Source: Takakia lepidozioides
Taxonomy: Eukaryota > Plantae > Bryophyta
Length of the DNA: 64,000 nt
NCBI GenBank assembly: GCA_030704615.1
Contig: CM060733.1
Span: forward strand, 39,370,001-39,434,000
Direction of reading: 5' to 3'
A program made the translations under genes and the position numbers. Shown here piece by piece: positions 24,111 through 46,490 of the stretch (its first letter is position 1; each line of letters starts with the position of its first letter). A model generated the notes under the pieces. The model did no database searches. It was not told where the DNA came from and saw nothing but the letters and a program-made list of their open reading frames with translations.

Positions 24111-26534
24111 ATGGATACAGAGATAGACTTAATATTATAATCTCAGAATTTGCATCGTGTACACGATTACCATTATGTTGTTGGAGACTATTTATTTGAT
24201 TCAGTTGTTTATTTGCTGCATGATGAAATATCATCTACAGATCTCCGACGTCAAACCATGAAACATTTTTTGCAAACTTTACAATTGCCCACTGATGAGG
24301 TGGCTGAAATGATTGAAATCCACTTTTCTTCAGACGCCCTCTATGAATTACATGGTGTTCGCACAATTGATGAATTTGTTCAACAAATGTCCAAAAGTGT
24401 TCTTTGTGGAGGTTTAGAAGGTGATAATCGTGCCATTTTTTGTTTAGCAAATTATTTACAAAGACCCATTCGGTTCTCCAACTACTTTATGACAATAGAC
24501 ATGCTACGAAGAGTGGGCACTTTGAACCTATTATTTTAAAAAGAACTCATTGCACTTCAAATGTTATGCGGTCAACCTCGATTTCAAATTCTCAATCGCT
24601 TTCAATTTCGGGATTTGCAACATCGGTACAACCTTCTTTGATATCACAACATGTCACTAAAAAAAGGGGTCAACAACAAAATGATATTATGAACAACACC
24701 AATGTAACCCCGAAAACACCTTGTTTTCAATGGCTACCAACTCATGATGAAGACATGTTCAATTTGATGGTCGAGTTTCCGTCGTCAACTCTCAAAGACA
24801 TAGCGCAGATCTTCTCCCGTCATTATGCAACTTTGAATCTCACATTTACTCAAATTTATTCTCATTTGCGGTGAATTAATAATAAAAGAAAGTATATAGC
24901 AAAACAAAATACACCGCAAATTGATTCTCCCATTGAACCTAAAAGTTTAGTCCAACCAATACCTCTTCATTCATTGCATCATTCCAACAATAATCCCATT
25001 GAAATTCATGTCAACTCTGCTCATCGCAGTAAATACATAGAAAAACTGTCTGATACACCAGTGCATCCATGTATGTGTTGTCGTCAACTATGTTTTAAAA
25101 AACAAATTGTTACACCGACAAAAAAATTGTTAAAAAAATTAGCCGTGTATATTCCTATTGTAACAACGGAACAAAATCATGGACAAATGTTTATATGTCG
25201 AAGTTATAAATTAATGTTTGACCACGATAAATCTCCTAAATTTGTAGTTCCTAACATAATTCATCTAAATGCTCCTATTAATAATGTTCAAAACTTCAAT
25301 GCGCTTGAGGAAAGATTAATTGCACCACGTATGGCATTTGTCCAAATATATCAATTGCAAGGTTATGGCCAATATGGTATACGTGGTAGCATTATAAACG
25401 TTCCATCAAATGTTAACAATACACAATCAGTTTTACCTCGCATGCCGAATGACGATACTACCATTGGAGTACTTTTAAAACGTCGTCTGGAATATAAATC
25501 TCCATATTTATCAGGAACTGTTCGTCCCAATTTTATTATGTTGGCTTTACATGATCTTGTTACTACTCCATTATACATAGAAACTAATGTTACCATTCGA
25601 CCACAATGGTTAGGATTATTTGCAATGTCTCATCAAACCGAACAAAATTGTATAAATATCGATGAACCATTAGAAGAATTTAATGAAATATCTCAAGATG
25701 AGTTTGAGGAAGTTGTCGAAAATACTACTAGCGATACTACGGTACAAAATATCCTCACTTCGGAGCAAATACAAGTATTTCATGATGGTCTATTAACAGT
25801 AGCTCATTCTCAAGACTTTAAACCATTGGGTCTTTTCCAAGATACTCATAGTGAAGAATTAAATTTTCCTACTTTGCTTTTTGGACATCCTCGATCAAAC
25901 ACTGGTTCATTGTCTTATCAAGCCATTGCACAATGGGAACTATTACATAAAGATCATGATTTCGCGAGACATATTCCAAATCTTTTTTTAAAAGCTATCA
26001 AAGTATTAATTCATGGCGTTACATCATCTTCATGGATTCGCATTCGTAAAGGTAAACTTCTTGGTAGACAATAGAAAGCGGGCGAACTTACTGAAAAACC
26101 AAATTTAGACAAATTATTACGCTCGGATCTAGGCTATAGGGATTTGGAAAGATTACGAGCATCGCCAGATTATTTGGCTCGTCTCCGCAAATAAACCTTT
26201 ACAATGATTCGACAACTAGCACCAAGTGCAGAAAGTAAATGGTCATCTTTACTGCAAACCATCCATTCGCTCAATCATAAAAAATTCCAAATGACATTCA
26301 AAATTTGGAAAGTAAACACGTTGCCGAACTGGTAAGATCGGATCCCATTACATGTGCTCGATATTATGATCATCAAATGGGTGCATTTAGACATCTATGT
26401 ATGAAAGATTATACCATTTTTGGAACACTCCGTGATTTCTTCTTTGTAACGGAATTTCAAAGCCGAGGCAGTGAGCATGATCATGGTATGTTATGGATAG
26501 CTAATGCACCAATTTACAGGGTTGATAAAAAAAA
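24111..26534 (+). pseudogene. RepHel 5' half: OTU-like domain, zinc finger and Rep (HUH), interrupted by the 16.5-kb insertion
   Basis: VVGDYLFDSV...GHFEPI (OTU-like), CMCCRQLCF...FICRS, LEERLIAPR...GSIINVP, RASPDY, DPITCARYYD and EFQSRGSEHDHGMLW (HUH). Confidence 0.9.
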
Positions 26535-27279
26535 AACCCTATTTTAATTAATTCTGGACTTTTGGCTTAAATCTGGACTAAACTTAATATATATTTGTAT
26601 TAAATTTAATTGAAATATTAATAATATCATGGTGTAATGTGTGATTGAACTTTGTGAAATTTCAGGTGATGTCATACTTGTTTCAAATGTGTCATAGAAG
26701 AGGTCCATTTGACATTGAAGTGCTTAATGTGAAGTAGCAGTATTGAACAATTCATTGAACATCCACTTGGAAGTCGAATAAAGTAATATTCCATTGCAGG
26801 TCATCATGATAAACAAATGGGTCGCATCGAACATGGGCCAAACTCGTACTGTACCATACTCGATACAACTTGCTAGTAATTTTATTGATTGAATGATTCT
26901 TCATATGAAGCACAATGTTCACATACCACGCCATTGGAATGAATCATGTTTTGGATGTGACAAGGGCAGTAAAATATTAGAATAACATGAAACATTCAGA
27001 AGAAGTACTAGGGTAATACAATAAGGTTTGGGGTGTAACTAGAGAGAAGTGTAATAAGGTTTGGGTTTACAGTAAGGGTAAGGGTTTAGGGTTTGGATTT
27101 AGGGTACAAAAAGACAAACAAATATGATGGACTCACACTCGGTAGAATTAAGAAATGGTTGAGGAATTTGATATCCCTGTAATCATTCTATCATACCTTA
27201 TCCAACAAAAGAAAATATTAAAAGAGCATGAAACATTGAGAAGATGTAACATGGTAGTACAATAAGGTTTGGAGTGTAA

Positions 27280-30200
27280 CTAGGGTATTGTCCACACAAC
27301 ATTGTTCACATGGATCCACTGAGAAGAATATGACGAGTTATACTCCCAAAGTTTTGACCAACAGTCCCTGTACCTTTCCAAATCTGTTGGGTTACCACAT
27401 TTTCTCGGTCTCCACCACTCCACCTTCACCTTCTTAAAATTAGGATCATCCCTTTCGCGGATCACGTCAGATATTGCCACCCCCATCCAAACCGAGCACG
27501 TACTTGGGTCATAAGGGCGAACGAGCACAAAAAACCCTTTCTCAATATCCTTGAACGGATTCAGGGATATTCTTGGTCGCTCACACCTCGGGCCACAGTA
27601 AGGTTCTAGGATTTCATCCTCTTCTTCCACATCTGGCAATATATGTGGATGGATTCCATCTCTGTGATGATTCTTGGACCAATTTATTTTCGGCCAGAAT
27701 CCCTCAAGAAGCTAAATACGGTCGGGAGCTTCTGGAATTGGCTTATCCAGCTCGGTGAGAATGTTTCCCCAATACTGGTCGTATTGTTCCATTCGACCTC
27801 TGTAATGATCGTCAAGCATCATTCATTTCGTCCAAAAATCCCTGTATTTTTTTACTCCATTCTTAATGAATGATTGTTTTTCGGAGGAGTCGTCCCCGAC
27901 TCCCCAGATAGGTCTCATTGGAACGGCGTCTGGGTCTCCTTCAGGGAGCTTCGAAGTCTCGTCAGGATTGGACTTCCACATCTTCACGCTATTGTCTGTT
28001 GGAAGTCAATCCGAATCAGTAGCGGACTTATTGTACTTCATGACGGGCCAGCCTTCCGCATCTTTAAAAAAACAGAAGACGTGTGAAATCCCGACCAACG
28101 CCTCTTTTCCATCAGAATACAGCCCTTGACAAAATTCTTGAAGTCGGGAACCTCCTGAATAATCTGTGGAATGAACTGCAGATCTTGCGAGGTCATAAAA
28201 GACCTCATCAAATCTGAAAGAATGTAGGTGCTTCGTTCCTTCAGCTTCTTCGAAATGTAGCTGAAGAACCCGTCGATGTCCTCATGGGTATGTCCGACCA
28301 TTAAGAACCCTAGCTGGATTTCTTCAAAAACATCTTTGGCGGTCAGAAGGGATAGAAAAACAAGCATCCATCTGTTCTTATTGTCCTTCGCAGAGTTGCC
28401 CATTTGCAAGTACAATCTTCTCGGAAGTGGACGAGCACCACGTTTGTCTTCCGGCCTGCAGGGTTTAAGAGCATCCAAACATCTCGATTTACCTCTTAAA
28501 AGTGATTCGAAGAACTCGTTTTGAAGTCGGTAATCGAAAATGTTCCTGGACTCGCAACAGGTTGGCTTCTCCAGCTGGCGCAGGCAACGTGCCAAAGAAC
28601 CAATTGTAAAGTTTGAATTTCCCTTCCAGAACTCAAGAGAATACTGACCGTAAGCTCCATCACCGTGTCCGTGCGTGACCATTCTCGTTAGTGAAACTGG
28701 AAGCTGACCCAATCCAAAAATCATCTTATTTGGAGTCTGTAGCCGTGGAACAGCTGTTTTCTTATGATCCATTTTGTCGTGAATAATACAGAGAAACTCC
28801 TCCGGAATCATAACAGACTCATTCATCGAGCTATGGTACAGTCTTCTGCACGACTCTTGGTGCCTCAAATGTTTATCAAGCGTTCGTTTGTGTGTCACAT
28901 GTTCCGCACTTCTCTTGACAGACTTTCTAATCAGGTCCTTGAACATCTCACACTCCATGCACTTCGCAAATGTACTCCCAGTTTTACGAACCTCCACGTT
29001 AGGAAATATCCGACCCCGGATGCGGCTAACAGCCGACTGCGAGACTTCTTCCAACCCGAAAAGTCTGTTGGTCTGTTACAATAAGGCAGGGTCAGGAAAG
29101 GAACGTACACTGGACAGTGGAGGTTCATGAAGCTAGAACCATAGTCGAAAGAGACAAAATTGAAGGGAAGATCATCCACATTGAATCAGAAAAATCTTCC
29201 AGGAAAGAAATTGAAAAATGGAGATTTCATACCTCGTTGGACTCGTCTCGTATTCGCTTCCAGTTCATTTCAGGTGGTAAGACTCTCAAAGTATCCCTCC
29301 TTCCCTCCCCAATGCATCTTGTCTTATGGGGCATGAGGTCAGTATTTCCGTTGACAATGGACATAATGTTACCCTCTGCCTGAAGCGTCCTTGGGCGTGG
29401 CCTCTTCGCTCCACGGTTCCCATGGAGACTTGACAACCAACCCTGTTTACTCAACTTTTTGTACTCCATGTATGTGGACCTGCCAATTCCATGAATTGTC
29501 CACCAAGCAATCTCACATACATCCACACCCTCAATCGTAACGTATGCCCTGCGAGAGGTCCCTTCCAGCATGTGAAGTCGTTTCGAAACATTCAGTCCGT
29601 GTTTTCTCCTCTCATCGAAAGTGGATCCCCAAAAAGAAGTACGGATAGCCAAGGTTTTTCGCCAATCGAAATATTGACAGCAGTGAAGTCTGCAGCAAGG
29701 TTTGCTGCTCACAGACCGGACTTCCTCCAGAGTAAGATTCTTCATTCTTTTTTTGGAGTGTTCCAAATCTCGATCCCTCTTCTTTCTCGTAAAATGCCGA
29801 TATGTCGCTTTTTTCACACATGCCTCGTGATCTTCGTACAAGATACTGTTAGAGGATCTAATAAAATTCTCCAGATCATTTGAAAGTAATTTCTCACTTT
29901 CCAAAAGTCGTGTTTTTGTTAAAGGCCATTTTACAAGAGACATCAAAGATCCAGAACCTCCAGAAAGTATTCTGGTGACAAGAACTCCAACATCGTCCTC
30001 TCCCAGTTTGTCATTGAGGATCACCTCGTCTGGAATGTACGCTTGAATCCTCCCCTCGAATAGTGCACCCCCATCATCACCCAACAGTACGCACTGCAAG
30101 TTTCTCCAGTTGTTTCTTCCGAGTCCTCCGCTCGGATTCCCGGAACTCTTCGATGGTCTGTGGTTTGATTCATCCTCGTCGTCGTAAGAAGTTTCGGCAG

Positions 30201-30561
30201 TATCTCTTGTCTCCGGCATAAAATCAGGATTCATGTCAGGCCCTCCTTGATACTCGTTATTCTCCGCAAGAACTTCGCCAACATTCCACATCATCGGGGT
30301 CCCAATGGCCTCCTTCAAGGTGTCAGCATCCATATGTCCATAAGGAAGAGGACATAATAAGTGTGCTTCATCACATGAGATGAGAACCACTAAAATGGTT
30401 GAGGAAGATAATTGTTGTCCATGACAGGTCCCAACCCCGGAGACATTAAGGCAGTCCCCAGTGGCTACTGGAGTTGAGGACCCGGGAAGAGTAAGAAACA
30501 CTCTTTGACCCGTCTCTAAAATCATGATCACCGGAACCTCCACTGCACACACGAGGTTCAA
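27280..30561 (-). pseudogene. Sola-like DDE transposase (intron 29232-29073; frameshift near 28110)
   Basis: PCCRLHCC...VCEIAWWTIHGIGRS, FAKCMEC, IIHDKMD, LYLQMGNSAKDNKN (expected catalytic D reads G) and FLMVGHTHEDIDGFFS. The true start is uncertain. Confidence 0.8.
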
Positions 30562-33355
30562 GAAACTGGAAACCCCTCCGTGACGACGTTACTGACAGTA
30601 ATAAGCAGTATGAGTGAAGACTATATTCAGAGATGAATCAATTCAATAAAAGGAAATACACTCGCGTATGAACGTTTCAGAGAAGTAGAATAGAAATGGA
30701 ATTGTTGTTTGGTCTGGAACATGTCATTTGAAGATTGTGTCTAATTATATAACCTCCACTGTACAAGTGGAGGTTAGATGAGATACAGATGGAAAAGTCG
30801 GACGGATGAATATTAGTGGATGAACATGGTTACGTGGATGAATAATTGTAATGACGGATGGATGTGAGCATTGACGCGACTGTCCAGTGGAGGTCCACTA
30901 CTTGGCCTATAACGAAATACAGAAATCGGAGAGTATTGGACTGTAATTTCTAAACATGCAGATGACAAATAAGTAGATTTTCCTGTAGAGTATAGAAAAC
31001 ACATAGATGTCTTAACATTTTCTACGGGTGAAAATGCAGTTCACACGAGAGATCATGGAAATTCAGAGAGTTACGCCTGCGATGGCCGCAGAGGTACTGG
31101 ATGCTCAGAGAGCTGCAGTATGGGAAGCAAGGTGGGAGATGACCAGAGAGGTGCGGGAAACACAATCTGCAAGTGAGAGGTATGGAGATAGAAGTTTGAA
31201 CAGTTTGCACTCAGACCTTATATAGAGGAAACCAGGTTGCCCGTTGGAACTCCTCCAATGGGATAGTGCGATACATTGTCTCCCGGATCGATTTCCGTCG
31301 CCGTTGATATCCGGTATGGCCACAATCGAACGATTCTGGATGGTGCAGGAGTGCACTCTTTGACCGATTTCGGAAAAGAGTGTCCTTTACTGGTAGATCC
31401 CTATGTAACAATTATGATGCCAAAAAGATAACGGCCGATAATGGTGGTTCAATGGTCTCGCACTCGTGCTTATAAAGCAGTACGTATTTTGCATTCAATG
31501 CTGTCCAAGTGGATGATGGCCTGACGCCGATGACAAGGTGCAGCTATGACACTCGGCCGAGAATGCGGCAGGCGTAAATGAGTGACAGAGGAAATATTCC
31601 AACCCTTAATCCGCCGAATGTAGACATGGTCAAGAGCAATAATTCCCAGCGGCAAAATGCCGCAAGAGGATCTGACTTGTACATTTCATTTATCGTCACG
31701 TGCGGGGTGTGGGAAATATCCCACGGGGTTATGATTGATAATCCTGTGCAAGGGATCATTAACGTCATATTTTCTCGTTCATTCATCTATTTTTTCATTT
31801 CATCTAGTCATTCATAAAATGGATGGATAGAATGGAAAGGATGAATTGGATGATATTTGCATGGATGTTGGATGGAACACGCGCGACCGTTCGATTTCGA
31901 AAGGACGTGATGGTTCAGATCCGACGCGACGGCACCATATAAGGGGTGTGGTCGTTCAGCCCACCCTTTCGCCACTCCATTGTGTACGCGGAAGCGCTGA
32001 GGAAGTGGTAAGACCAAGTAGCGCTAGAAAAGAGAGAGTTTTGAAGAGCGGAGAGCGTTCAGGGTGTCGTGAGAGCTGAGAGAAGAGAGCGTGCAGTTCA
32101 GTGCAGCGTGAGAGTGCAGTGGAGGAAAGGAAGCAGACAGCGGATTCAAGTGTAGACAGGAGACGGGAAGGAAGCAGAGCGTAAGGGAGAGCGGTGGAAG
32201 CTTAAGGGTCAGGCGTTTCAGGTCAGCAACAGGGGCACCGAAATGGCTCACGCATCTAGCAGGTAATGTTCTCGTTTACGCATGTGGTTTGATGTCATTC
32301 TCTTTTGCTCGCTTGTCATTCTCTCATTCTCTCTTTGTTCTGTTTGTTGATTTGTTTTTCTTTTTGTTTTGCTATTGCTTTTGTTGGTCAGCATCGCCCA
32401 CGTCGCTGTTGGTTTGCTTCTCTTCCTCACTCGCTTTCGTTCCAGAGGTTATAGAGCACCATTTGATTCTTGCATGTCATGTTTCGTGAGTGTGGTGTCT
32501 TGTCTGATACGGAGCTTCTCTTTTCAATTCATGTGGTTCCAAAGCTGTTTCAATTAGTTTGAATTGATTAAAGCTGTTTAGGTGTTTCAATGCATTGTTG
32601 CTTCTCTGCTGGTGGTTTGTATGGTGGTTGGTATGGGTGGTTTGTGGTCCTGGTTTACTGGTGCTACTGGATTATTAGGGTTATGGATTAGGGTTATGGC
32701 GGGTTAGGATCATGGTTTTTAGCGATTGTTTTTCCGAATTTCCGATATTTGATAACAAGTTTTTCTTCGGGGCTAGGCTACTCTAGTAGACTAGTCTCCG
32801 TAGACCACTAGACCTCTAGTAGACCTCCATAAACTCCGACAGGACAAACCACATGAACCTCGTCTGCCCAGTGGAGGTTCCTGCGTGTTACTATGCCAAG
32901 GCACAACATAAGGATGTATTGAGATAGACTTATGTAGGTTCCTCCCCTGCGTTGATTTTTTGTTCTGTCAGTATAAAAAGAACGGGCGTAGGAGTGCACA
33001 CGGTGGCCAAAGATGGTTCTGAGACCCCGTCGTCGACATCTGTAAGAGGCCAAGGAGACAGAATCCAGTAAGCATCAATGAAGTAGAAAACCAAGACGAA
33101 TCATTGGTTTTATCGAAAACAAAAACCTTCAAGAAGAGATCTGAGAATCAAATATCAGATGTGGGCTCTGACGTGCGAACCTTCATAAATCCGGGCACTG
33201 ACGAATCAATGTTCGAGGGAGTTATTTGACGGGAGACAACGGAGGAAACAGAGGAAGAGAAAGATGAAAGTGATGACTGTAATCTTCAGTCTGATTCAGA
33301 TAATGACATTTCTGTAGGAGATAGTGAATAGTACCAGGGATCCGTCCTTCCGTCC

Positions 33356-33532
33356 TCTCCAGGATACAGTCCTCACTCTCCTCAGTATGCAGTCCTTGTA
33401 AATTCTCCAGAATATGTCCCCGCTGATTCTCCAGAATATGTCCCTGCCGATTCTCCTCAGTACATCCCTGGAGATTCTCCAGAATACATCTCTGGAGATT
33501 CTCTGACATATACACCTAGAGAGTACTCCCCT
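33356..33532 (+). repeat. 24-bp coding tandem repeat encoding SPGYSPHSPQY...(D/N)SPEYVPA-type units
   Basis: GATTCTCCAGAATATGTCCC-type units, about 5 copies, translated by hand from 33356. Confidence 0.9.
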
Positions 33533-35187
33533 GAAACCTTGAGGATGATTCGAGAGAGCCTCCTGTAGTTATTGTAGATACAAGAAAATGAAAAGATGAA
33601 ACTCATCTTACAAAAGAATATCGATTTATTGTAGAAATTATATATTCGTTACATTCATTTGTTTCTCGAAAATCTCCGAATGTCAAGAATGATCACCTGG
33701 CAATTTTTGAGCTGAACCCGGAGATCACAGAATGGGGCATTGTACCCGTTGGCACACCTCCGGACCATAAGTTTCGGTTCCAATACAAGATTGGTGCAGA
33801 GGTCGCCGAGCTCAAATATGCAGATGTGGTCGACGTAGAGCTGGAGATGGATGTGGAATTTCCGATGTTGGTAATGTTCATGATGGAAGATGGTAGATTT
33901 CTCAGAACGTTTGACTTCAAACCGGAGGTACGAATTCTAAGGAAGGCCATGATGAGAGAGTCCATTCGGGCGGGGTTCACATATTGCGACGAGGGTACTC
34001 AATTTACAGATGAAGGTTTTTGCATGGCTTGGGGTATTTTCTTGGATGTGCTTTACTTAAAGGGTAAGGAGATTGCAAAGACGCGGGAGGAGGAGGCTGC
34101 AAGAGCGAAGCCAAAGAAGGGAAAATGGAAATCCATTGACGCCGGTGGTGATGACAATGAAGCCGGTACATCAGGGGGAAAGAAGAAACAAAAGGGGGAG
34201 ATGGATCTTGCGTTCATGACAGATACCAAGAAACCCAAGGCTGCAGACATATTCGACAAAGACAAGTGTGAGAAGATGCTGGAGAGGCTGGAGCAAGACT
34301 ACAAGGACATGTTTCCTTTTGGGTTTGAGGCGACCCAGGACGTCAAAGTTTCCATGATGGAGCTTGCTCCCAGGGATATGGTGTACAGGCCCCTAAATGT
34401 GAAGCACAAAGACGAAGTCAAGGCGCGTCTTTACCAGCTCCGGGTGTTCGACTCCAAACATCCAGTTTATTTGATTCCCGCAAACCCCGAGAAGCCTATG
34501 GAGGTTTCTAGTTCGAAACCTCGAAACTGGAAGGAGGTGGAAAATTCCAGATTCTTTGTCATCGGTGGACAACACACGATCATTGCTGCCAAGGTAAATT
34601 TCCCGACAAAATTCAATTTTTGTAACAACATGAACCTCCACTGTCCAGTGGAGGTTCATGAACTTTAAACAACATGCTTGTTAGATCGATATCATTTCTG
34701 ACCTTATTCAATTCTGTCGCAGGAACTTGTGCAAGACATAGACGACGACAAACTTAAGAAGTACTACACTGACTGGCCCTCAAAGATTATATGGTCAAAG
34801 GATCTGATGAGGCTCGTGAAGCTATCTAAGTTCCTAAACGACCCGAATAAGGCACAGAGATTTGACACAACATTTCTCGAGAAAGTTGCACATGCCCGAA
34901 ATTTCTTTGAGCTGAGGGGGAGGCCGAAAAAGTACAACGATTACACAACGAAGTCGAAGACTAGACAATGGAAGGTAAATGATTCATTGTGTTTTCCGTT
35001 CCTTTTGCTAGAGAACCAAAATATTCTCAAGCTTGGATTTAATGTGACAAACGGAGACCGCATTACGAAGCAGGAGACAGTACAAAAATAGCTTCATAAG
35101 GGAGGGTGCTACAATGATCGAGCGGGATGGTTCAGCATTCGGAAATTCGACATGATGGGGTCTTTTGTAATGTGTCTTGTTTGGTAA

Positions 35188-35432
35188 TGAGGTGCTTGTC
35201 CAGCTCTTATTCTCCCAATCTATTTATGTTCTCCACCTGTAACAGTTCCGCAAATGTGCCGCAAAAATACTTGAAACATCATATGATCATGAAAACGTGA
35301 TGTTGCGGAGAACGCTTCCAAAACTTTTCATGCTCATTGGGTTTTTCAAGGATTTTCTAGGTACACTCTTGGAACTGTTCCTGGTGGAGAACATGAACAG
35401 ATTGGACAAATTTGACTTGGAGGAGCACCGCA
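35188..35432. repeat. Imperfect long inverted repeat (arms ~110 bp) in a cargo-gene intron
   Basis: CCAATCTATTTATGTTCTCCACCTGTAACAGTTCC (~35215-35250) pairs with GGAACTGTTCCTGGTGGAGAACATGAACAGATTGG (~35371-35405). Similarity extends inward and outward. Confidence 0.8.
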
Positions 35433-38400
35433 TTCCGAAGCAGGAGACACTACAGAAAGAGCTTCAAATTACAAGGCACAACAAGATGGACGGAGATGAA
35501 TTCACAATCGAATCATCACTTGGTGTATAGTATAATTGACAAGATAGTTGTGACTATTGTTTCATCTCAAGATTAATATCAAATATTGAATGAAATGTCT
35601 AACTTTGGCCTTGATAATTTTCGTAGGAATTTATGCAAGCATGTCAACTCATACTGGAGATGAGTAGCGTGAAGGAGGCCATGGTTCTGGTTCTTTGTGA
35701 CAAAGACGTATGGAACCTGAGGGAGGAGGTTTCAAACAGTGGGAACAAGGGAAGCTTATTGATATTTTCGGGATTCAGTGCAAGGGTGAACAGCTACCGC
35801 TGAATAAAACCGCTATCGTGAAACTGCAAGGACTTAATAGCAGGCACTTGAAAAGAGTGGCGGAGAAAATCCTAAACAGAGACATTTGCATTCGAGGAAC
35901 GAAATTCAAGGGCGCGGACAAATCCAAAAACACAATGAGCGCGTATATTGACCAAATGAAATTGCGACGGTTTATTATCGACGATGTAATGGAAGTCTTA
36001 GGGTGGCCTCGGAGGAGCAAACAGAACCCGGAACCGTATACCAAACAGGAGTGGCGTGATGTTAAAAAAAAATACAACTTCAACAAAGCTGAGTTTGAAA
36101 CATTTCGAGATAGGCTCGGGAACGACTACATTGTTAGCAAACAGAAGATGAATATGGAGACGTAGCCAATGACTGCTGAAGTATGTCTTGTCGTGCAAGC
36201 AGACCTTCGAGGATAACCAAAATGCCCTGGCGATTCTACGCACGAGCTTCAGGTCCCATTACACACATCTGGGGGGAAACCAGAAATTTGCTGATGCCAG
36301 ATCACAGTTGGGACTTGCACCAAAGAATCGGTTCCACGACATATCCATGGTGTTCGTCAATACAGTTTGTGATGATGACTCTATTGTCTTCGAGACAAAG
36401 GACTACTCAAATATCTTGGATGCTTTTGTGGCTCGGCAGCTCATGTCCAGTGCTTTTGTGTTTTTCTCCACACAAGAATCATCGGGAAATCTTGTGTCAT
36501 ACATCCGGAATGGCCCTGGATCAAAATCGTTTATTATCCGACAGGGTTATTACATTCCCGACGAGTTTGAATCACCTTACAAGAGCTGCACGACTATTTT
36601 CTCCCAGACGGTCCTCTGCCTCGACTACTTATTTCCGGCAATAGCTGAGGAGATGGTGAATCCGGACGACCACATTCAAACTGTTTTGTTATTGCCGGAC
36701 CCAATTAATCTCGTTATCCAAGGACCAGATGTAGACCCGACCTCGCAGGAGATGGAGTGCAGGACTTACAATCATGAGCTGAGGCCGGACACCTACGATT
36801 ACCTGGTTTTTTTTTTTTGCAGGGACGGGATGTCTTGTGTGAACATTTTCGGAGGACTGACAATGACATACGTTCTGCTTGTAAGTGGATTCTGCATCTT
36901 GGAATTGTCTGTGTTTTTAGTTTTCCGGATGTAACTATCGTATTATTGACGTTGTCGGAAAAACGTGTTTAATCTGTGTCTGATTGTTCCATTTTGTTAA
37001 CCTCCACTGGGCAGTGGAGGTTCATGTTATTGGAGTTGTGGGTGTTTTGGGTGTTTGTTATTCTGCAGATTGGTGTGTTTGGTAGTTGTCTCAAAAGAAA
37101 GCCTATCGATGGTTGGTGTTCGTCGGATTTATTTTGATATCATTGTTTGGTTTCATTGCAGGAAAAAACATATTTGTGTGCTCGACATAAACTTTGTAAC
37201 AAAAAAGAAATTTTGTAGAAGCAAGGTGGAGGCCTATTTCAGGACCCTCCAGATTGACAATCAGACTATCGCAGGAGACAGAGATGACGGAGACTCACTA
37301 CAGGATGACGAAGTGGACGAAGAAGATGATGACGAAGGACACGACAAGGATCAGGATGAGGAAATGGAGGAGAAACAAGAAGAGGATAACGATGAGGAGA
37401 AAGACGAAGATGAGAACATGGAAATCGTCAACGGAGTCCAGGGGCAGATGCGGCTAATGTTGGAAAGGGAAAGAGAGGGCCAGGAAATTTCACGGTTGGA
37501 TAATCTAGGTAGTACTCCAAATACCCAAGAACGCGTTGCGCCACAACATGTACACAATCTGGACAGCTCTTCCTCCAGTTCCGATAACACCACGAATAAG
37601 AATCCGGCTTCTCCAGGTGAACAAAAAGCGACATCGACGGAGTTAGTTGAAACCCTCGGTCAAGGGTTCACACCTGTGGAAGGTGACGAGCCATTGATTA
37701 TGTCACCGAAACCCGTTAACACTCGTCGTGAGCTGGTGTCCCAGAATGTCACCCAGGATCTGGTTCTGGATGTAGGTAATGAATGACAATTAGTGAAAGT
37801 TTATTCGTACACACTTCTGAATACAATATGACAATATTGCAATTATACATACTTGTGAGTGGAATAATCCGAATGTTATTTCAAAATTACAATATTGTAA
37901 TTATATATAATCCCAATGTTTTTCCCATATCCGTCTTTCTGGACTTCCGAATAAAACATATTTCCACCCGGATACATATTTTCGTTCGCACATCTTTGTG
38001 GACAGCCACTAACCGATTTGGATAGCTTTTATTGTAGATCCAAGAATCCAATTCGGAGGAAATGACACACACAATAAAAGGATGAAAGGACACTCAAACG
38101 GTGAAGAGACACGTGGATCTGACATTGAGGGTCAGGTCACCTGAGCCGGTTCTGCAAGTAACCTCCACTGTCCAGTCGACGTTGCCATCAAGGGACGCAG
38201 GGATTGAGTCGGAGAATCCTCTTACTCGCGGGGAAGGAGAAGAGACAGAACACCACAATCGCGTAATCCAACAACAGATCCCGATTCAGGTAAAACATTG
38301 GTTTTTTTCTTATCACTCTTATTATTGGTCTTTCAGTCTCATCTTCGGTATTGCTCAATTCGGTAATTTTGTCAGATCATTTTGGACCACCATAGTCGTC

Positions 38401-41400
38401 ATCCGTGGGATTTTTCATTTATTTCTTGTAGATTTGTGAGACGACGTCTGAGGAGATCAAACACACGAGGACCGACTCCATCGACACTAAGACGGTGAAG
38501 AGAAGAGTGGATCGAACAATTACTGTCGCTCTATCTGAGCCGGTCATACAAGTTACCTCCACTGGACAGTCGAGGTTGCCATCTGGCTCCACAGAGAAGG
38601 ACGATAATGTTGGACGTAGAGATGGGAAAGAGGAGGAGCAGCCTGCCCAGGGATCTCAACAGCCCAATCCAAAATCGGTAATGATTTCAACTCCATTCTT
38701 CCGTTTGTCTACTTTGGGATTTCTCAAATTGAAATTAATAATGAACTCTTCTGTTATTCCACAGGACAACATGCATTACCCTCCAGTCGACTATTCCCTT
38801 TCTGTCAATCCAAACGATCTGCATTCCCTTCTTTGGGGACCGAACGGATGCCGGCCAGGATACTACGTCCTGGTTCTGGACATCAGTTACCTTTGTGAGG
38901 TTTTCCTAAAGGATGGAAAGAAAACACCTCCTACCACCTAGCCTTGTATCTCCGTAGCTACGCGAAACGGTCTTGACGAATTTGTTAAGTGGGCCGTCAA
39001 AAAGTTTGCCGTTTGTTTTTGGAACACTGGACCTGAAATGAATGTCGAGACTATCACCAAGGCCGTGTTCAGGAAGTACTATTCCTAGGTCAGAACTTAC
39101 AGCAGTGAGAATTCCGTCATGCATAGATCGACATTCAACGAAAAATGGCCCAAAGCTTCAAAAAATCCCATCTACTTTAAACGTCTTTACAACATTTTCG
39201 CTGAGGAAGACCCGACGGCTTACAAATCCAATACTCTCATCATCGACACTGTAGACAATATGTACAAGTCCTATTTGAACCCGTTAGGACATACCATCTT
39301 CCTTCTAAAATATAAGGCGCGCGTGGACCCTGACAGGGATAAATTTCTACTGGAAGAGCTCAAGCCTCACCTTAACATGTTCCGGTTATCGGGGATGGAT
39401 GTCATGCCTTTCAACGACCTACATCCTTTCGGCGTTTCGAAGGATTTCTTCGAGGACGACCCAGCGGTCAAATTTCTTAGAGGCTTTGATTATAGGTGGC
39501 AGAAGTTTCTTAGCAATCTCGAGTTGCGTGCCGCTGCATTGGGACATAAAATATTTTAACTGAGTTTGGTGAACCTCGACAAACACTACCGGTTAGGGAT
39601 TTGGAGCTCTATGATGTACAAGAACTTGCAGCCCATCCTGGATTTTTTGCTTCATGGTCTACCTCAACCGGCCTTCGTTATGTCTCAAGAGGATTGTATT
39701 TCATGCCCTACTTCGGTTCACCCTCAATTCAAATCAAGATTGGACCCTCCTCATTTGTTTTTGAAGCCACTGGTCAAGGTCTGGAAGGGATTTGGTGGGC
39801 AATACACCAAGAGTAACACTCTGCTCATTGACGACACCGCCATGAAGTGTGTATTGAACCCGTCCGACTCATGTCTTGTTCTCAAACCGTTCCAGACCGT
39901 TGAGACTGATGGTTGCTATCTTCTCAAGGTTCTTCAGACCTATTTGCTTGGAATGAGGAAACATCCCACTGTTTCAAGCTACCTTAGGAGAAAAATGATA
40001 GGGTTGAGTTTTTTTTCCCAATGTTTCAAACGATCCCAAGTTTAGCCCACTCTGGGATTTTATTGAGGACAACGGTTTTAAGAGTCTCAGATATGATGCT
40101 TCAAAATAAATTATTTTTGATCAATCCCATCTCACTCGAGCTATTGAATATCTTCATGGTTTCTCTTTTTCATTTCCTTGTAATCACACACATGAAAAAT
40201 ATGGTACTCTCATTTTGACTCATTTTCAGTTGAATTCTTGACGCACATTCCGGGCAATCCCAAGACTCTGATACAGGCCTTCATACGGGGACAAGACTAT
40301 ATCTAGTGACTTCCACTGTTCAGTGGAGGTTCGCATTCGTGCATTCCCGGATTTATGATTATGTCTCTTTGGCAGGTTCAAGGAGATGCTGACAACGTCA
40401 TCGGTTCCTCAAGTCTCCTAAAGGAACCCTCCGGATCAGCTGTGAGTCGGAGTATTGAAGGCTTTCCGAGGGTTCGCGATGGTGCTCAAATTGAGGATGG
40501 ATCCTCTGTCAGACCCTTGTCCTCCCGAGAAGCGGGCGACACTCTTCTCCTCTCGGGTCCTCCTGGGGGTAAAGTCCAAGGTGCAGGTGAAGAACACAAA
40601 TATCCCGGAGACTTTATCGACCTTTCTCAACATTCCTCACCCTCCCTGTTCAGTACGTAGGGTCTGGTCTATCCAACCGTCGGGGACTCGGCTACGGCTC
40701 CGCTGCACCTGCTTCCGTCTCTTCCTCGCATATCTCCCCAGCACGAGGGTTGGACAGCCCAAATCCGCGCTTGCCTATTGTTGCCCCTCCACTTCTCCCC
40801 TCGTTCAATGGCAAAACATCTCCAACATCGACACAGCGTGACCCTGAACTGCTCGCACAATGTTCTGCACCAAAGAGGCGAAAAACAACCCTCGAGCCAA
40901 TTCCTTCCTCTGAAGGGAATCATTCCAAAGGACAAAAGACTGACAAGAAAAAAAAACCGGACTCCAAACACATGAGGACTCCCTCGGATGTTGTGGCGCC
41001 TCGTCAATCCAAGCCTGCAGGAATCCATTGTTCTTCTGCAAGACATTCCAATAAGGCTTCAATGGTACATTTCAAAACAATTTCTCCATTTTCGTTTGTA
41101 GTTTTTTTTTTTTTGTCCCAAACTAACTCCGTAATTTCTATACAAGCGAGTATGGAGCCGCATAACTTTTTGAATGCACCTCCCGACAAGGTGCGTCCAC
41201 TAACCTCCACTTGACAGCCGACGTTCATCTTTTCGTGATCTCGAACTCTTCGATATATGGTCTACTCTTGGTCCTTTACAGTAGTCCATTGTCGGGACAC
41301 TTATGTCTCCGAAAACGTAGAGGTCACTCTGAAACTAAGAAACACTACATTGTGTTGTTTCTGACGGCGGGAACACTTAAATTGCGCAGGTTGGTATCGT

Positions 41401-43059
41401 CCATCAACCTTCATTTGCAACATCGGGGAAGAGGAAACGGATGCTGTTAATATTGAGTGTCAACGGTCTCCTTTGCTATCGGCCACCTCCAACCGGCGGT
41501 GAATTGTTTAAGGAGAGATTTCGTTTCAGGAAAGTTACAGTTCATGTTCTCGAAAGACCTTTTGTGGTTCTCCGGCCCGGAGTCTTGGAGTTTCTCAACC
41601 TTGCGTTTATGCATTTTCACGTGGCGATCTGGTCATGTGCTGAAAGACATGTTCTTTGTAGGATGCTCGAGTGCTTAGTTTCTACAAAAATTGCGAAGAA
41701 GTTTTGCTTCATCTGGTCAGCTGAGGATTGCAAAGACACTACCGGTTATATCATGCCTGGGATGAAATATCTCGTTAAGGATATTCGCACTGTTCTTGCC
41801 AAGTACCCTGGTACACCCTTTGCAACGCAGGGACAAATACTCCTTGTTGATGATGAGTCATCAAAGGGCCTCTGAAACCCACCAAATACGGGATTCTTCC
41901 CTATCTCATACAAGCCATCATCAAAGGGATTGATGACCAGGATGACAAAAGCTGTGTGGCCATATATATTGAAAATGGCTGCAGTTTCAACAGTCGTAGA
42001 TTACATCAGCGAGAACCCTGCCAAGTGTTCTCGTAAGCCTATTGGTCGTGACCATGCCTATTGGGCTTGATATGGAAGATACGTTGATCCTCGTGTGTGG
42101 ATCCCACAACAAAAGGAACCTGATTACATTGGTATGTACTTATCCCACTGTTTGTTGTTTATGGAGAATTTGATCTTGAAAGTGTCTTCCACTTGCACTT
42201 TTACTTTATCATTTTTTTTACAAATGTTCCACATTTCAACTGACATTTGTCATATGAAAAATTGTTTTGCCCAGTCACATTCAAGGAACGAATTCGAAAA
42301 GAAGAAGAAGAGCTTCGTGATTGGCAAGAATGGCGGGCTTCCCGGCAGGCTTCAAGGGCATCAAGAGATTGAACAAGTAGAGTTCCAAATAACATTTCGG
42401 ATGATAATGTTACTACTAGGTTCGAGTTCTCCGAAAGTATTTCCGTTTCATCTGGTGCGGAGACCGTTGCAAGTGGTTGTGGTAACCGGAGGCGTCTTCG
42501 AACACATGCCTTGACTGCGAGCCGATTGGGAGGAGGCTCTGTAATATTAATGGGTTAGTGTAAGCCGTTGTATGGCTTCGAGCCGCTGGATAACATTAAG
42601 TCCAACGGATGTACAGTTGACGTTACATTAGGTCTGACTGCAACGCCAAAGTTGCAATCTCTAATAAAATATGAATGTTTATCATCAATGTATGCGGACA
42701 CATTCTTTCATATTATCCTCTTCATCACATGCTATGATTGTTCTATGTTTGGTTTTGTATGTCATCTGATATGACAACCATGTTCTGCAAAAAGTTTTAC
42801 ATATCTGACCTCACATCATGGTGTAATTTATTGCATCCTCCCATTTTTTTCGTGAACGTCAACTTGGCAGTGGATATTCTTCTAAAACCACAATACATAC
42901 TTATATTGTCTCCAAAAAATGTTTGGAGGATTATATTGTGTATAAAATAACCAAAATAATCATATATATCGCTTTATTTCAATAATAAATTTTGTTTATT
43001 CATATTTCTCATATTATTTCTGGACCAAACAAAAGTCCAGAATTAGTTAAAATAGTGTT

Positions 43060-46000
43060 AAAATGATATAATTGAACAATTCGTAGATAAATATATAACA
43101 TCCGATAGTAATGTTCTTCCACCCATTCTACGTGAAGCTCAAACCCATCGGCACAAACGAACATGCAGGAAAAAGAATCAAGCTATATGTCGTTTTCATT
43201 ATCCATTGCCCCCAATGAATTCTACCGCAATTTTGGAACCTTTAACAGAACAATTAAACAAACAACAATTGATGCATTTGAATCAAATATCAACCGTAAT
43301 ATTTACTGAGTTGGACAAAATGGATATGGGTTTAGATATTACATTTAATGAGTTTCTTTCATTATTACATATTGATGAAAAAACATATGTAGCTGCTTTA
43401 TGTAGTAGATTACACAAACCAACTTTATTTTTAAAAAGAGCATGTAAAGACATTCGCACAAATGAATTCGGCATACATGCGGGCCCACTGTGGCAAGCTA
43501 ATACTGATGCACAGTATATTCTTGATCCTTATGCAGCAGCTAGTTATTGTACATCTTATCTAACTAAAATAGATAAAACTATTATTAATGAATTTCGTAT
43601 AATCATAGAAAAATGTAATTCAGAACAAATTGATGCAAATGTCAGAATCCGTAAAATGGAAAATATTTTCCTAAATGCACAACCTCGGCTCAATTGGTTG
43701 CATATATTGTGTTATCCATACCACTATATCAGGCATCAAGAACTTTCAAATTTATAAATACATCATCTCCATCATCTCCGCAAGAACGTGCATTTGTATT
43801 GAAATCCGATAAAGATTTGCGAGGTCTTCCACCCGAATCCACAGATATTAAATGTTCGTCTGCTATTGACAAATATATTGAGCGACCAACTACATTACAT
43901 CACTTGAGTCTCAGTGAATATGTAGCAGATTGTAATGTAGATAGAAGTAATATAAAACCGTGGCAAAAATCCCATATTATTAGGTATGTGCACTATAACG
44001 AACATCGCGATTCCAAGAACTATTATCGGGAACAACTTCTACTTTTTCATCCATTTGTGGGAAGCGAAGAATCACAAAAAGGCGACCATGAAACATGACA
44101 TGATGCTTATTTGGTTCATAAACCAACTATATTGATGAAATGTGACAAATTCATATATAAGTTCCTAACAAAAAACATTACTATTTCAGATAGAACCAAA
44201 CGTTTTTCAGTCTCTCACAGATTGCACAGTGATTGAAACATATGACATAGCAACAAAATTCCATTTGCATCTTGAAATTGGATTGTCAACAACAATACCA
44301 GAGGCAAACATATCTACAACACCTGACAACATTATTCCTAATAAACAATTTTATGAACAACTGCGAAAGCTTAATCCAGAACAACGTGCAATTTTCGATA
44401 ACTGCATACACAGAAAACAGATGTTTCCTGACAAACCCTTGCATTTGTTTATAACTGGGGGAGCAGGAACTGGAAAAACGTTTACTTTACTTATTATTAT
44501 TCAATGTCTGCTTAGATTTTATAATAAACATCCACAATCTGACCCACTTAAGAAAAAAGCAATTATTATGGCTTACACTGGCAAAACAGCCTTCAATACT
44601 GATGGAACAACCATTCATTCTAGGCTAAGCATACCTCTTAATTGCAAAGATTTGCCTTCACTCGGATTAGAACGATTGGACACGTTGGTAAAATCATTTG
44701 ATCAACTACAACTTATGGTGTTAGATGAAGTGTCTCTTGTGGGTAATAGGATGCTTACGTTTATTGATCAACGACTACGATCAATTAAACAAATTCATGG
44801 TACTTTCTTTGGTAATATTGATGTTATTATTACTGGAAATTTTTATCAGGCACCGCCAGTAAGAGATTCGTGGGTTTTTAAGAAAAAACTCGGAAGTCCT
44901 GATGCTTTAGTTCTTGGTTTTTGGCAGGACTGTGTTAAATGTTACGAACTTAATCAAGTAATGCGTCAATCAAATAATAATTTATTGGCATACTCAATCG
45001 ACTACGAACAGCAACAGCAACCCGACACGATATTAAGATTCTGAATCAACAATGTTGTCGCCCTCCGCCAAACAATCCAGCATTTCCACATTTATATTAT
45101 ACCAACAAAAATATGTTAAGTCATAATCACAAAGCATTCGAGCAAACTAAAGCATCTGTATATATTTTTGAAGCTATTGACAAACACCATGATACATGTC
45201 CATCTACTTTTAAGCTCTTGGACAATGCAGCCAACACGCCCGGCTTACATACAACAATTCATGTTAAAAAAAAGATGTTAATTGAATTATGTGCAGGAAA
45301 TTATGCAACTCATGATGGTCTAGTAAATGGGGCTGACGGTATATTTAAACATACTTCCGTGTTAACAAATTCAACCCCTTTAATATGGATACAATTTAAC
45401 AATCCAAAATCTGGTGTTGCTACACATGCAAAAAATATTCACTTATATAACTCAACAATAGATAAGTTATGGACTCCAATTCAACCCATTTCTAAAGAGA
45501 TTCAAATAGGATCAAATACTTTACATATAATTACTAGAACCCAATTTCTTATTCAATTAGCAGCTGCTGAAACAATCCATCATTCTAAAGGCTTAACTTT
45601 GGACTATCTAGCATTCGATCCTACAGGGGTATATGAACATGGTTTAAGTTATACAGCTTTGTCACGCATACGTAACAAGAAAAAACTTATACCTCTTAGC
45701 AAATTTGCAATTGAAAATTTTTCATGTTGACAATGGGGTTGCCGAGGAGATGCAACGTCTACATACAAGCGCACGATGGCAGTTACTCGTACCAACTTTG
45801 CACATATACACACAATCACATGTAATTATACAGCACTTGAATACAAGATCATTGTTATTACATAAAGAAGATGTTTTTGCAGACCACAACTTACAAACGG
45901 CTCATGTTTTATGTTTTAGTGAAACGCACTTCAAACCTAATTCCAATATAAATCTGTTTATGGATTCCACAAAATATTCATATATCGCTGTACATGGTAG

Positions 46001-46490
46001 TCATGGCACCATGATGCTATATGACACAACAATGTCCTTAGTATCTTATGAAGTGTTTTCATTCTCTGGTGCTGAATATATAATGGCCACATTCAATAAA
46101 AATACAAGAAGAGCTATTCATGTAGTTACTATTTTCAAACTTCCATCACTTTCGATATCTATATTTTTGTCTCAACTACAAACAATTCTTCATAAAATAC
46201 CACATTTCTGTCCCACCATTATCATAGGGGATTTCAATATAAATATATTACAAAATAATTCAACCATATCAAAACAATTGCTACAATTCATGAGGATGTT
46301 CAATATGACACTTCAATTCATGAAAACTACTACAATACATGGTTCATAGTTGGACCATATTTGGACAAATACACCTAACCAACAATGTATTTCAGGAGTT
46401 ATAGAGGCATATTGGACAGATCACAAACCTATATATATAGCTATCAAACTACCAAACCATGTTGTTAAATATCATCATTCTACAATATAG
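43060..46490 (+). pseudogene. RepHel 3' half: Rep C-terminus, PIF1-like helicase and C-terminal APE/EEP endonuclease
   Basis: QTHRHKRTC...CRFHYP, YAAASYCTSYLTK (catalytic Tyr region), ITGGAGTGKT, LDEVS, GNFYQAPPV, QVMRQ, TIHHSKGLT and YTALSR. Endonuclease motifs NTRSL, FSET, GDFNIN, LDHIW and TDH. Frameshifted. Confidence 0.92.

Follow-up and report, generated by a model that had tools for sequence, protein, structure and literature searches.

To our knowledge, discrimination of self from non-self by a transposon family is known in very few cases, namely VANC of the VANDAL elements and TnpA of Spm. TnpA, the second protein of the CACTA element En/Spm, binds repeated 12-bp motifs, aids transposition and counters methylation, and the motifs of VANC are short non-palindromic repeats in the non-coding parts of its own family. 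As summarised in a study of red-algal transposons, VANC of Arabidopsis VANDAL21 is element-encoded and is the basis of a self-specific anti-silencing model with family-specific short motifs (cited in 10.1101/2025.02.11.637652). Two algal systems come closest to the element described here. In Ectocarpus, the 21.5-kb Sola-1 element Sola1-1_Ec32 carries an opposite-strand gene that joins a ParB-like region to an N4C/N6A methyltransferase, and its authors proposed that the product binds and epigenetically modifies its own transposon, citing earlier green-algal and red-algal cases (PMC12477816, Genome Biol 2025); the word stem "palindrom" is absent from that article by text search. In the red alga Bostrychia, the PAG3 protein of a Plavaka (EnSpm) element combines a ParB-like region with a 2-oxoglutarate (2OG) oxygenase, has the ParB structure family 7BNR as its best HHpred match, and is encoded next to tandem inverted-repeat arrays that vary across families, for which self-binding and a comparison with VANDAL have been proposed (10.1101/2025.02.11.637652; Curr Biol 2025). 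Here we describe an element of 16,525 bp from the bryophyte Takakia lepidozioides, at positions 26535-43059 of a 64,000-nt stretch of contig CM060733.1 (GCA_030704615.1), hereafter the window. It is a decayed giant cut-and-paste DNA transposon with a DUF7869 (Sola1-like) transposase, inserted in a Helitron, with a second, accessory (cargo) gene and an array of palindromes.

Sola1-1_Ec32 and the window element are alike in being giant Sola-1-type elements whose accessory gene, on the strand opposite the transposase, has a ParB-like plus methyltransferase-like product. The present element differs in its length (16.5 kb), its land-plant host and the loss of the methyltransferase motifs DPPY and FxGxG, and its family adds one to three NIF/FCP1-like domains and a Ser-Pro/Tyr repeat. 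With PAG3 it shares a ParB-like accessory protein of the same structure family and family-specific inverted repeats, whereas the transposon superfamily is another one, the partner domains are methyltransferase-like and NIF instead of a 2OG oxygenase, and single sites dispersed in introns and spacers of both genes take the place of tandem arrays beside the gene. All the marks of the algal ParB-type accessory-gene elements (a giant DNA transposon, a ParB-like gene and element-specific inverted repeats) are thus present in the window, the algal proteins being compared by description. Like the VANC system, the element pairs an accessory protein with family-specific motifs concentrated in its non-coding parts, although no sequence or fold relation to VANC was found, the sites here are palindromic and the function is a predicted one. 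Like En/Spm with TnpA, it has a second element-encoded protein alongside repeated short motifs, their binding being putative here, but TnpA sites are subterminal, those of the window are spread over the interior, and the proteins are unrelated. Bacterial ParB-parS, Noc and KorB have in common with it the fold of the ParB/Srx N-domain (Z 8-10) and palindromic sites similar in size; unlike them, the bryophyte protein has GQH[ST] in place of GERRxRA, no visible helix-turn-helix (HTH) and no ParA partner, and belongs to a eukaryotic transposon.

The initial annotation had presented this locus as a candidate new system. Accessory genes of the ParB-like kind beside arrays of inverted repeats had, however, already been reported, along with the idea of self-binding and the likeness to VANDAL (10.1101/2025.02.11.637652; PMC12477816): the self-recognition concept was published in 2025 as a proposal for algal transposons, and the window element is its land-plant version. 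In the literature searched, no NIF/FCP1-like fusion, no catalytic loss in all modules, no dispersed intron-borne sites at fixed positions and no land-plant case were found. Taken as a whole, the observations are best explained if the palindromes of each family are read by the accessory protein, which would link them to the transcription machinery, and we put the probability of this reading at about one half.

The palindrome of the window is a 24-nt unit, AACCTCCACTG-NN-CAGTGGAGGTT, which a repeat search recovered in 11 copies between 29103 and 42879; a twelfth, near 30751, has an indel that gives it a 3-nt spacer. A search with a 20-nt core pattern and up to three mismatches returned nine matches where 0.06 were expected, all nine inside the element, and 15 of the 16 half-sites with at most one mismatch are also inside it. 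The host genome was covered by the 64-kb window, in whose flanks, 47 kb in total, no palindrome was found, and one scan of metagenome contigs gave 0 matches. The earlier count of at least 11 copies, seen in the element only, thus rises to 12 and keeps its confinement within the window. All 12 stand in non-coding parts, that is, in the spacer, the leader, introns and the 3' region. From the left, they occupy an intron of the transposase gene (29103-29126), the 5' leader of the transposase open reading frame (ORF), upstream of all homology (30536-30559), and the divergent spacer of 30562-32243 that separates the two genes (30751-30775, with the 3-nt spacer, and 30873-30896). On the cargo side, a copy in the putative intron 1 (32857-32880) is followed by a perfect one in the intron of the ParB-like domain (34634-34657), one between the methyltransferase-like and acidic exons (37000-37023), two that belong to a duplicated segment of about 100 nt (38161-38184 and 38555-38578), one after the second NIF-like domain (40309-40332), and two degenerate ones (41203-41226 and 42856-42879), of which the last is about 150 nt inside the right end. 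Some copies extend to 32 nt, CATGAACC...GGTTCATG, including the perfect one (34629-34660). The sites are dispersed over 13.8 kb and are not subterminal, and the left 2.5 kb of the element is free of them. Descent of the palindrome variants from a decayed CG-rich ancestor was considered and rejected, as GTGGAGG and GTCGACG differ by C/G transversions, which are not deamination products. No Rfam family matched within the element.

Relatives of the cargo were fetched by means of its ParB-like piece and its middle domain, and come from independent public assemblies with prokaryote-style gene calls. Seven further loci, drawn from at least five assemblies, show the cargo architecture again with long open frames at 20-35% identity, and identities this low indicate that the architecture is old. 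Five loci (L008, L009, L010, L012 and L014) are colinear over an N-terminal region and ParB-like, helical plus methyltransferase-like, acidic and NIF regions, except that the NIF domain was not seen in L008, and a sixth, L003, has ParB-like and NIF regions. In the seventh (L013:8928-14844), ParB-like and methyltransferase-like genes, without a NIF domain, are arranged tail to tail with a DUF7869 transposase of 772 aa that has no intron and appears intact, as opposed to the head-to-head layout of the window.

Most of these loci bear a palindrome of their own. It is CCAGTGGGCAATTGCCCACTGG in L008 (11 copies), of the type AAGTTATC-TTGA-TCAA-GATAACTT in L009 (GTTATC-TTGA-TCAA-GATAAC; 9 copies), of a third type in L010 (3 copies), TTATCGTCGGGTCGACGATAA in L012 (about 17 copies) and GGTATCGTCG-NNN-CGACGATACC in L014 (about 12 copies), those of L012 and L014 having the common form TATCGTCG-NNN-CGACGATA. 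Arrays are also present at two transposase-only loci, L001, with about 13 copies of GTATCGGCGG-N-CCGCCGATAC (also written TATCGGCGG-N-CCGCCGATA), and L006, with 24 copies of GTGGGGAGGCCTCCCCAC. By one strict metric applied throughout, between 5 and 12 sites of the top palindrome family are counted in each of L008, L009, L012, L014, L001, L006 and the window element; the controls gave 1 per window flank and at most 2 in Markov sequences. The sites are concentrated ahead of the gene start and in the gaps between ORFs, and in L008, L009, L012 and the window the gap that follows the methyltransferase-like exon contains palindromes of the locus's own type.

Some further features of these sequences deserve mention. 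The hexamers of the window palindrome, CCACTG-NN-CAGTGG, are swapped in L008, which has CAGTGG-GCAATTGC-CCACTG, and outer TATC...GATA arms are common to L009, L012, L014 and L001, which hints at evolution by half-sites. The DUF7869 transposon of L006 (8000-17593; ENA ERZ25039595 contig_2366), with dense palindrome arrays, shares its contig with a cell-wall cluster of bacterial type (MraZ, Methyltransf_5, Transpeptidase, Mur ligase and MraY), with split ORFs; the pairing may be real or the result of a chimeric assembly.

The positions of the intronic sites are best followed in the transposase gene, which occupies 27283-30561 on the minus strand and encodes a decayed DDE transposase (Pfam DUF7869, E 5.6e-35). 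It has 122 homologues, the best at 59% identity, and most of the named ones belong to the liverwort Riccia sorocarpa, with a single one from a bivalve; DUF7869 found no mention in the literature searched. Against the intronless transposase of L013 it aligns in three blocks; a frameshift falls near 28130, and the tail has two in-frame stops. An insertion of 160 nt at 29073-29232, predicted from this alignment to be a GT-AG intron of phase 0 on the minus strand, falls exactly between L013 residues 328 and 329 and has the first palindrome near its middle. At the same residue pair L006 has a gap of 360 nt with three L006-type palindromes, and within a few residues of it L001 has one of 193 nt with one L001-type palindrome; the L002 transposase has a gap there as well, and L013 none. 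In the cargo gene, the ParB-like domain, uninterrupted in the relatives, is split in the window by a predicted GT-AG intron of 129 nt and phase 0 (34594-34722, plus strand) with the perfect palindrome in mid-intron. Two palindromes therefore sit in GT-AG introns that divide coding sequence continuous in intronless relatives. Fixed positions that carry family-specific sequence are hard to explain without a function.

The cargo gene itself, multi-exon and decayed, lies on the plus strand at 32244-42067, divergent from the transposase gene, and is pieced together from ORFs with colinear homology to genes of L008, L009 and L010; we infer that it starts with the ATG at 32244 and ends near 42067. 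Its exons were searched singly, unjoined, and folds were predicted on intact relatives instead of the broken window copy. The ParB/Srx-like domain (34111-35088, plus strand; exons 34111-34593 and 34723-35088; motif GGQHT) matches the relatives with phmmer E-values from 6e-12 to 2e-11. For the relative P0142, residues 230-475 were modelled from a 19-row alignment (A1), giving a core with a predicted local distance difference test score (pLDDT) above 85 that superposes on M. xanthus ParB (7bnk) with a VIA-align Z of 10.4 and a root-mean-square deviation of 2.3 over 95 residues. ParB, Noc, KorB, PadC, sulfiredoxin and other proteins of the ParB/Srx fold make up 48 of its top 50 Foldseek rows. Judged from this modelled relative, the cargo carries the ParB N-domain fold. 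In the part of the protein that was modelled, the structural matches stop where the N-domain ends, and two low-confidence helices follow. At the alignment position of the GERRxRA box, through which canonical ParB binds cytidine triphosphate, all seven sequences (the window and six relatives) have GQH[STM] instead.

Downstream, a helical region and a domain resembling beta-class DNA methyltransferases, with degenerate motifs, occupy 35710-36931 on the plus strand. Pfam matched neither of the two window pieces (35710-36162 and 36188-36931), a homologue search with 36188-36931 found none, and 35701-36162 gave just weak colinear phmmer matches before a profile was built; the domain was reached through the second ORF (ORF2) of the relative L009. 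Both pieces can be aligned with the second ORF found in the relatives (alignment A2), which in L009 has 71 homologues, 0 of them with a Pfam domain. The model of L009 ORF2 has a mean pLDDT of 85, and its C-terminal half (residues 247-455), to which 36188-36931 aligns, is predicted to have the beta-class N6A/N4C DNA-methyltransferase fold. The Foldseek search found 5hfj at 3.4e-4, and all of its 50 top matches were N6A, N4C or MT-A70 methyltransferases; VIA Z for residues 247-455 is 12.7 to M.BceJIV, 11.8 to CcrM and 11.7 to RsrI and MboIIA. Neither the catalytic (D/S)PP(Y/F/H) nor the FxGxG motif that binds S-adenosylmethionine is present: across a 32-row alignment DPPY has become D-x-R and FxGxG has become F-x-G-x-K, and the window reads SYIR and IFGGLT. 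Fold comparison alone was informative here, in that PDB sequence profile searches with A1 and A2 returned nothing meaningful and a protein atlas had no usable matches for L009 ORF2 or the N-terminus of P0142.

The 3' part of the gene encodes three NIF/FCP1-like domains on the plus strand, two at 38870-40042, where phmmer matches the NIF domains of L010 and L009, and a third at 41381-42067. Pfam NIF (PF03031) scores 25.9 bits at 39566-40042 and 31.3 bits at 41441-41872, for a gathering cut-off of 21.8, and these two domains are preceded by the first, which is partial. The L009 NIF domain scores 55.4 bits and has human SCP1 as its nearest solved relative, with the DLDET of SCP1 aligned to DLNGV. 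The catalytic DxDxT is replaced by DISYL in domain 1 and by SVNGL in domain 3 of the window, and by D[LV]NG[VI] in four of four relatives (L009, L010, L012 and L014, which have DLNGV, DVNGV or DLNGI). The same motifs are consistently lost in relatives whose open frames are long, which suggests that a non-catalytic role has been retained for a long time and speaks against simple decay. Because every enzyme-like domain lacks its catalytic motifs, enzymatic action of the cargo on the C-terminal domain (CTD) of RNA polymerase II (Pol II), which one might read from the earlier description of the protein as CTD-phosphatase-like, is unlikely. The domain list given in the initial annotation was otherwise sound as to the ParB-like and NIF/FCP1-like parts, the latter above the Pfam cut-off, and had missed the methyltransferase-like domain.

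Exon 2 of the cargo gene, which three in-frame stops interrupt, runs from an acidic stretch through one YSPHSPQ heptad into four or five SPEYVPAD-type octads (33356-33532, plus strand), which the repeat search describes as 4.2 copies with a 24-nt period. Tandem YSPTSPS heptads like those of the Pol II CTD are not present, and YSPHSPQ matches that heptad at five of seven positions. An acidic linker exon of low complexity (37055-37786, plus strand) has a D/E-rich run in its translation and a 27-nt repeat at 37367-37417. A further stop lies in NIF-like domain 1 (38939-38941); together with the stops of exon 2 and the lesions in the transposase tail, it agrees with the earlier statement that this copy is decayed. 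Between the ParB-like and methyltransferase-like exons there is also an inverted repeat of 133 nt (35163-35457; 74% complementary, 29-nt loop) flanked by 40-nt direct repeats at 35057 and 35427, which looks like a foldback or an intron insertion resembling a miniature inverted-repeat transposable element.

The ends of the element are well defined, and we are highly confident of its anatomy as described. It is a discrete unit bounded by terminal inverted repeats (TIRs) of 30 nt that are 93% complementary (26535-26564 and 43030-43059, from a repeat search of the window), with AAAA directly outside each end (26531-26534, the candidate left target-site duplication, and 43060-43063). A 4-bp target-site duplication with a preference for AWWT is given as a hallmark of Sola1 in the passage of PMC3845634 that cites Bao et al. 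2009; the duplication here has 4 nt and is A/T-rich, is not AWWT, and has its boundary inside an A-run, which leaves it ambiguous by 1-2 nt. With the DUF7869 match, these ends agree with the earlier description of a TIR-bounded, Sola-like element with a minus-strand DDE transposase. The insertion site is a Helitron (24902-26544 and 43062-45041), with a DUF6570 ORF upstream and a PIF1 helicase downstream (44229-45041). The left flank is in the frame of the HUH-type motif region of the Helitron Rep protein (...EFQSRGSEHDHGMLW...YRVDKKK), and the right flank resumes the same frame (NDIIEQFVDKYITSD...CRFHYPLPP). Since the Rep frame breaks off and resumes across it, the element is one discrete insertion, and the continuity of the frame, an exact reading of the empty site, fixes its ends more firmly than the TIRs alone would. 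No other fragments of the element were found elsewhere in the 64-kb window. The motif TCTGGACT is repeated near the left end at 26553 and 26572, and TCTGGACY near the right end at 43019 and 43034. Distinct from the palindrome, TCTGGAC(T/C) has four of its six window copies at these places, just inside the element and within 50 nt of its ends, and may be a subterminal motif bound by the transposase. Past the Helitron helicase, an ORF at 45705-46346 has a sub-threshold match to Exo_endo_phos_2 (25.2 bits, cut-off 27.4) and possibly belongs to a long interspersed nuclear element; the surroundings here are nested repeats.

As to how the element might use its palindromes, they are probably functional protein-binding sites, and in the reading we prefer they would be cis sites for a dimeric protein encoded by the element, most likely the accessory protein. 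Its methyltransferase-like module or an unassigned region would provide sequence recognition and its ParB-like domain self-association or bridging, and the non-catalytic NIF-like domains, along with the Ser-Pro/Tyr repeats in the window family, would tie the marked DNA to transcription partners of the phospho-CTD type. The outcome would be that copies of the family are kept expressed or shielded from silencing, as with the accessory proteins VANC and TnpA. Introns appear to be the carriers by which sites are spread along the element with its coding sequence undamaged. Of the separate steps, binding of the palindromes by the cargo is proposed tentatively, and an output in transcription or anti-silencing, drawn by analogy, is doubtful. 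An extended form of the idea takes the system as a self-recognition code, in which a scaffold of three disabled enzymes reads a family-variable palindrome, short introns, acquired at set places in both genes and recruited as cis-site carriers, mark the 10-20 kb body, and coupling to phospho-CTD resists silencing; in all its parts this is rather improbable.

Several observations weigh against the accessory protein as the reader, and they lead to the transposase. Palindrome arrays are carried by L001 and L006, where no cargo was found within 6-10 kb, and no cargo was found within reach in any of the three closest transposase loci fetched, the third being L002. Arrays without a detectable cargo imply that the transposase could be the reader, so the cargo is not the sole candidate binder that the initial annotation had made it. 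The palindromes might then be internal or subterminal transposase sites that help so long an element to undergo synapsis or excision, with an unrelated role for the cargo. At L001, 10 sites pass the strict metric, and at L006 at least 7 do (24 under looser counting), clustered close to the transposase gene on either side and inside its intron, and a Cys-rich stretch in the N-terminal part of the transposase could bind DNA. On the other hand, in L008, L009, L012 and L014 the arrays surround the cargo gene and the 6-21 kb of sequence hold no transposase, and the window sites are spread through the element instead of lying near its ends, which bear a different repeated motif. We regard this alternative, the main rival, as unlikely. 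Arrays at both cargo-only and transposase-only loci mean that either protein could read the sites in trans; the dispersed sites and the different end motif slightly favour the cargo, and the presence of TCTGGAC at the ends faintly suggests that the transposase recognises a sequence different from the palindrome. The accessory-protein reading is further weakened by the P0142 model, which shows no DNA-binding HTH after the ParB-like domain and hence no candidate there for the reading module, and by L002, L003 and L010, where arrays are weak or missing (2-3 sites by the strict metric, as in L013). The CTD mimic of the initial annotation comes down to one heptad with five of seven matches and four or five octads, and no such repeat was seen in the fetched relatives. 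Finally, the Sola1 label is a provisional one that derives from DUF7869, the 4-nt A-rich duplication and the Ectocarpus parallel, and the copy is dead and gives no information on its own activity.

Explanations that do without a dedicated DNA-binding protein fare worse. If the palindromes acted as RNA, intronic hairpins would tune splicing or feed small-RNA production, which suits the two or more sites in canonical short introns and the others in gaps between exons; many sites are, however, untranscribed or upstream, including the tandem clusters before the gene start in L009, L012 and L014, the stems have just 11-14 bp, Rfam gave no match, and the family-private sequence would be left unexplained, all of which makes this very unlikely. 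Much the same holds for insertions of a selfish or mutational kind (hairpin mini-elements or products of gene conversion), some of them intron-making and all functionless for the element. The introns 29073-29232 and 34594-34722, absent from intronless relatives and each with one near-central palindrome, and the duplication of a site-bearing segment of about 100 nt would fit such an origin. Yet the flanking DNA has no palindromes, different family palindromes at one intron position in three lineages would require concerted turnover over the whole element, and arrays have been kept in lineages that share only 20-35% protein identity; we give this explanation little credence. That the cargo arose when fragments of host genes were captured by chance (Pack-type), and has no role for the transposon, is close to refuted. 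A window copy full of stops and NIF as a common host domain would suit it, but the order of ParB-like, methyltransferase-like and NIF regions is no one-off and is found again, in long open frames, in distant relatives. The middle domain by itself has 71 homologues, and the algal Sola-1 element has a gene with ParB and methyltransferase regions in the same position (PMC12477816).

In three respects the land-plant element goes beyond the algal proposals of 2025. The turnover of palindromes between lineages at fixed positions of the genes provides comparative evidence for a function, and the CTD-phosphatase-like domains of the conserved triple pseudo-enzyme suggest that its partner is the transcription machinery. 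The window copy, itself dead, serves as an example of the family, and with the occurrence of such an element in a bryophyte and the availability of transformable model species, the idea of self-recognition becomes testable. If its extended form is true, introns would have been recruited in this transposon family as carriers of cis-regulatory sites.

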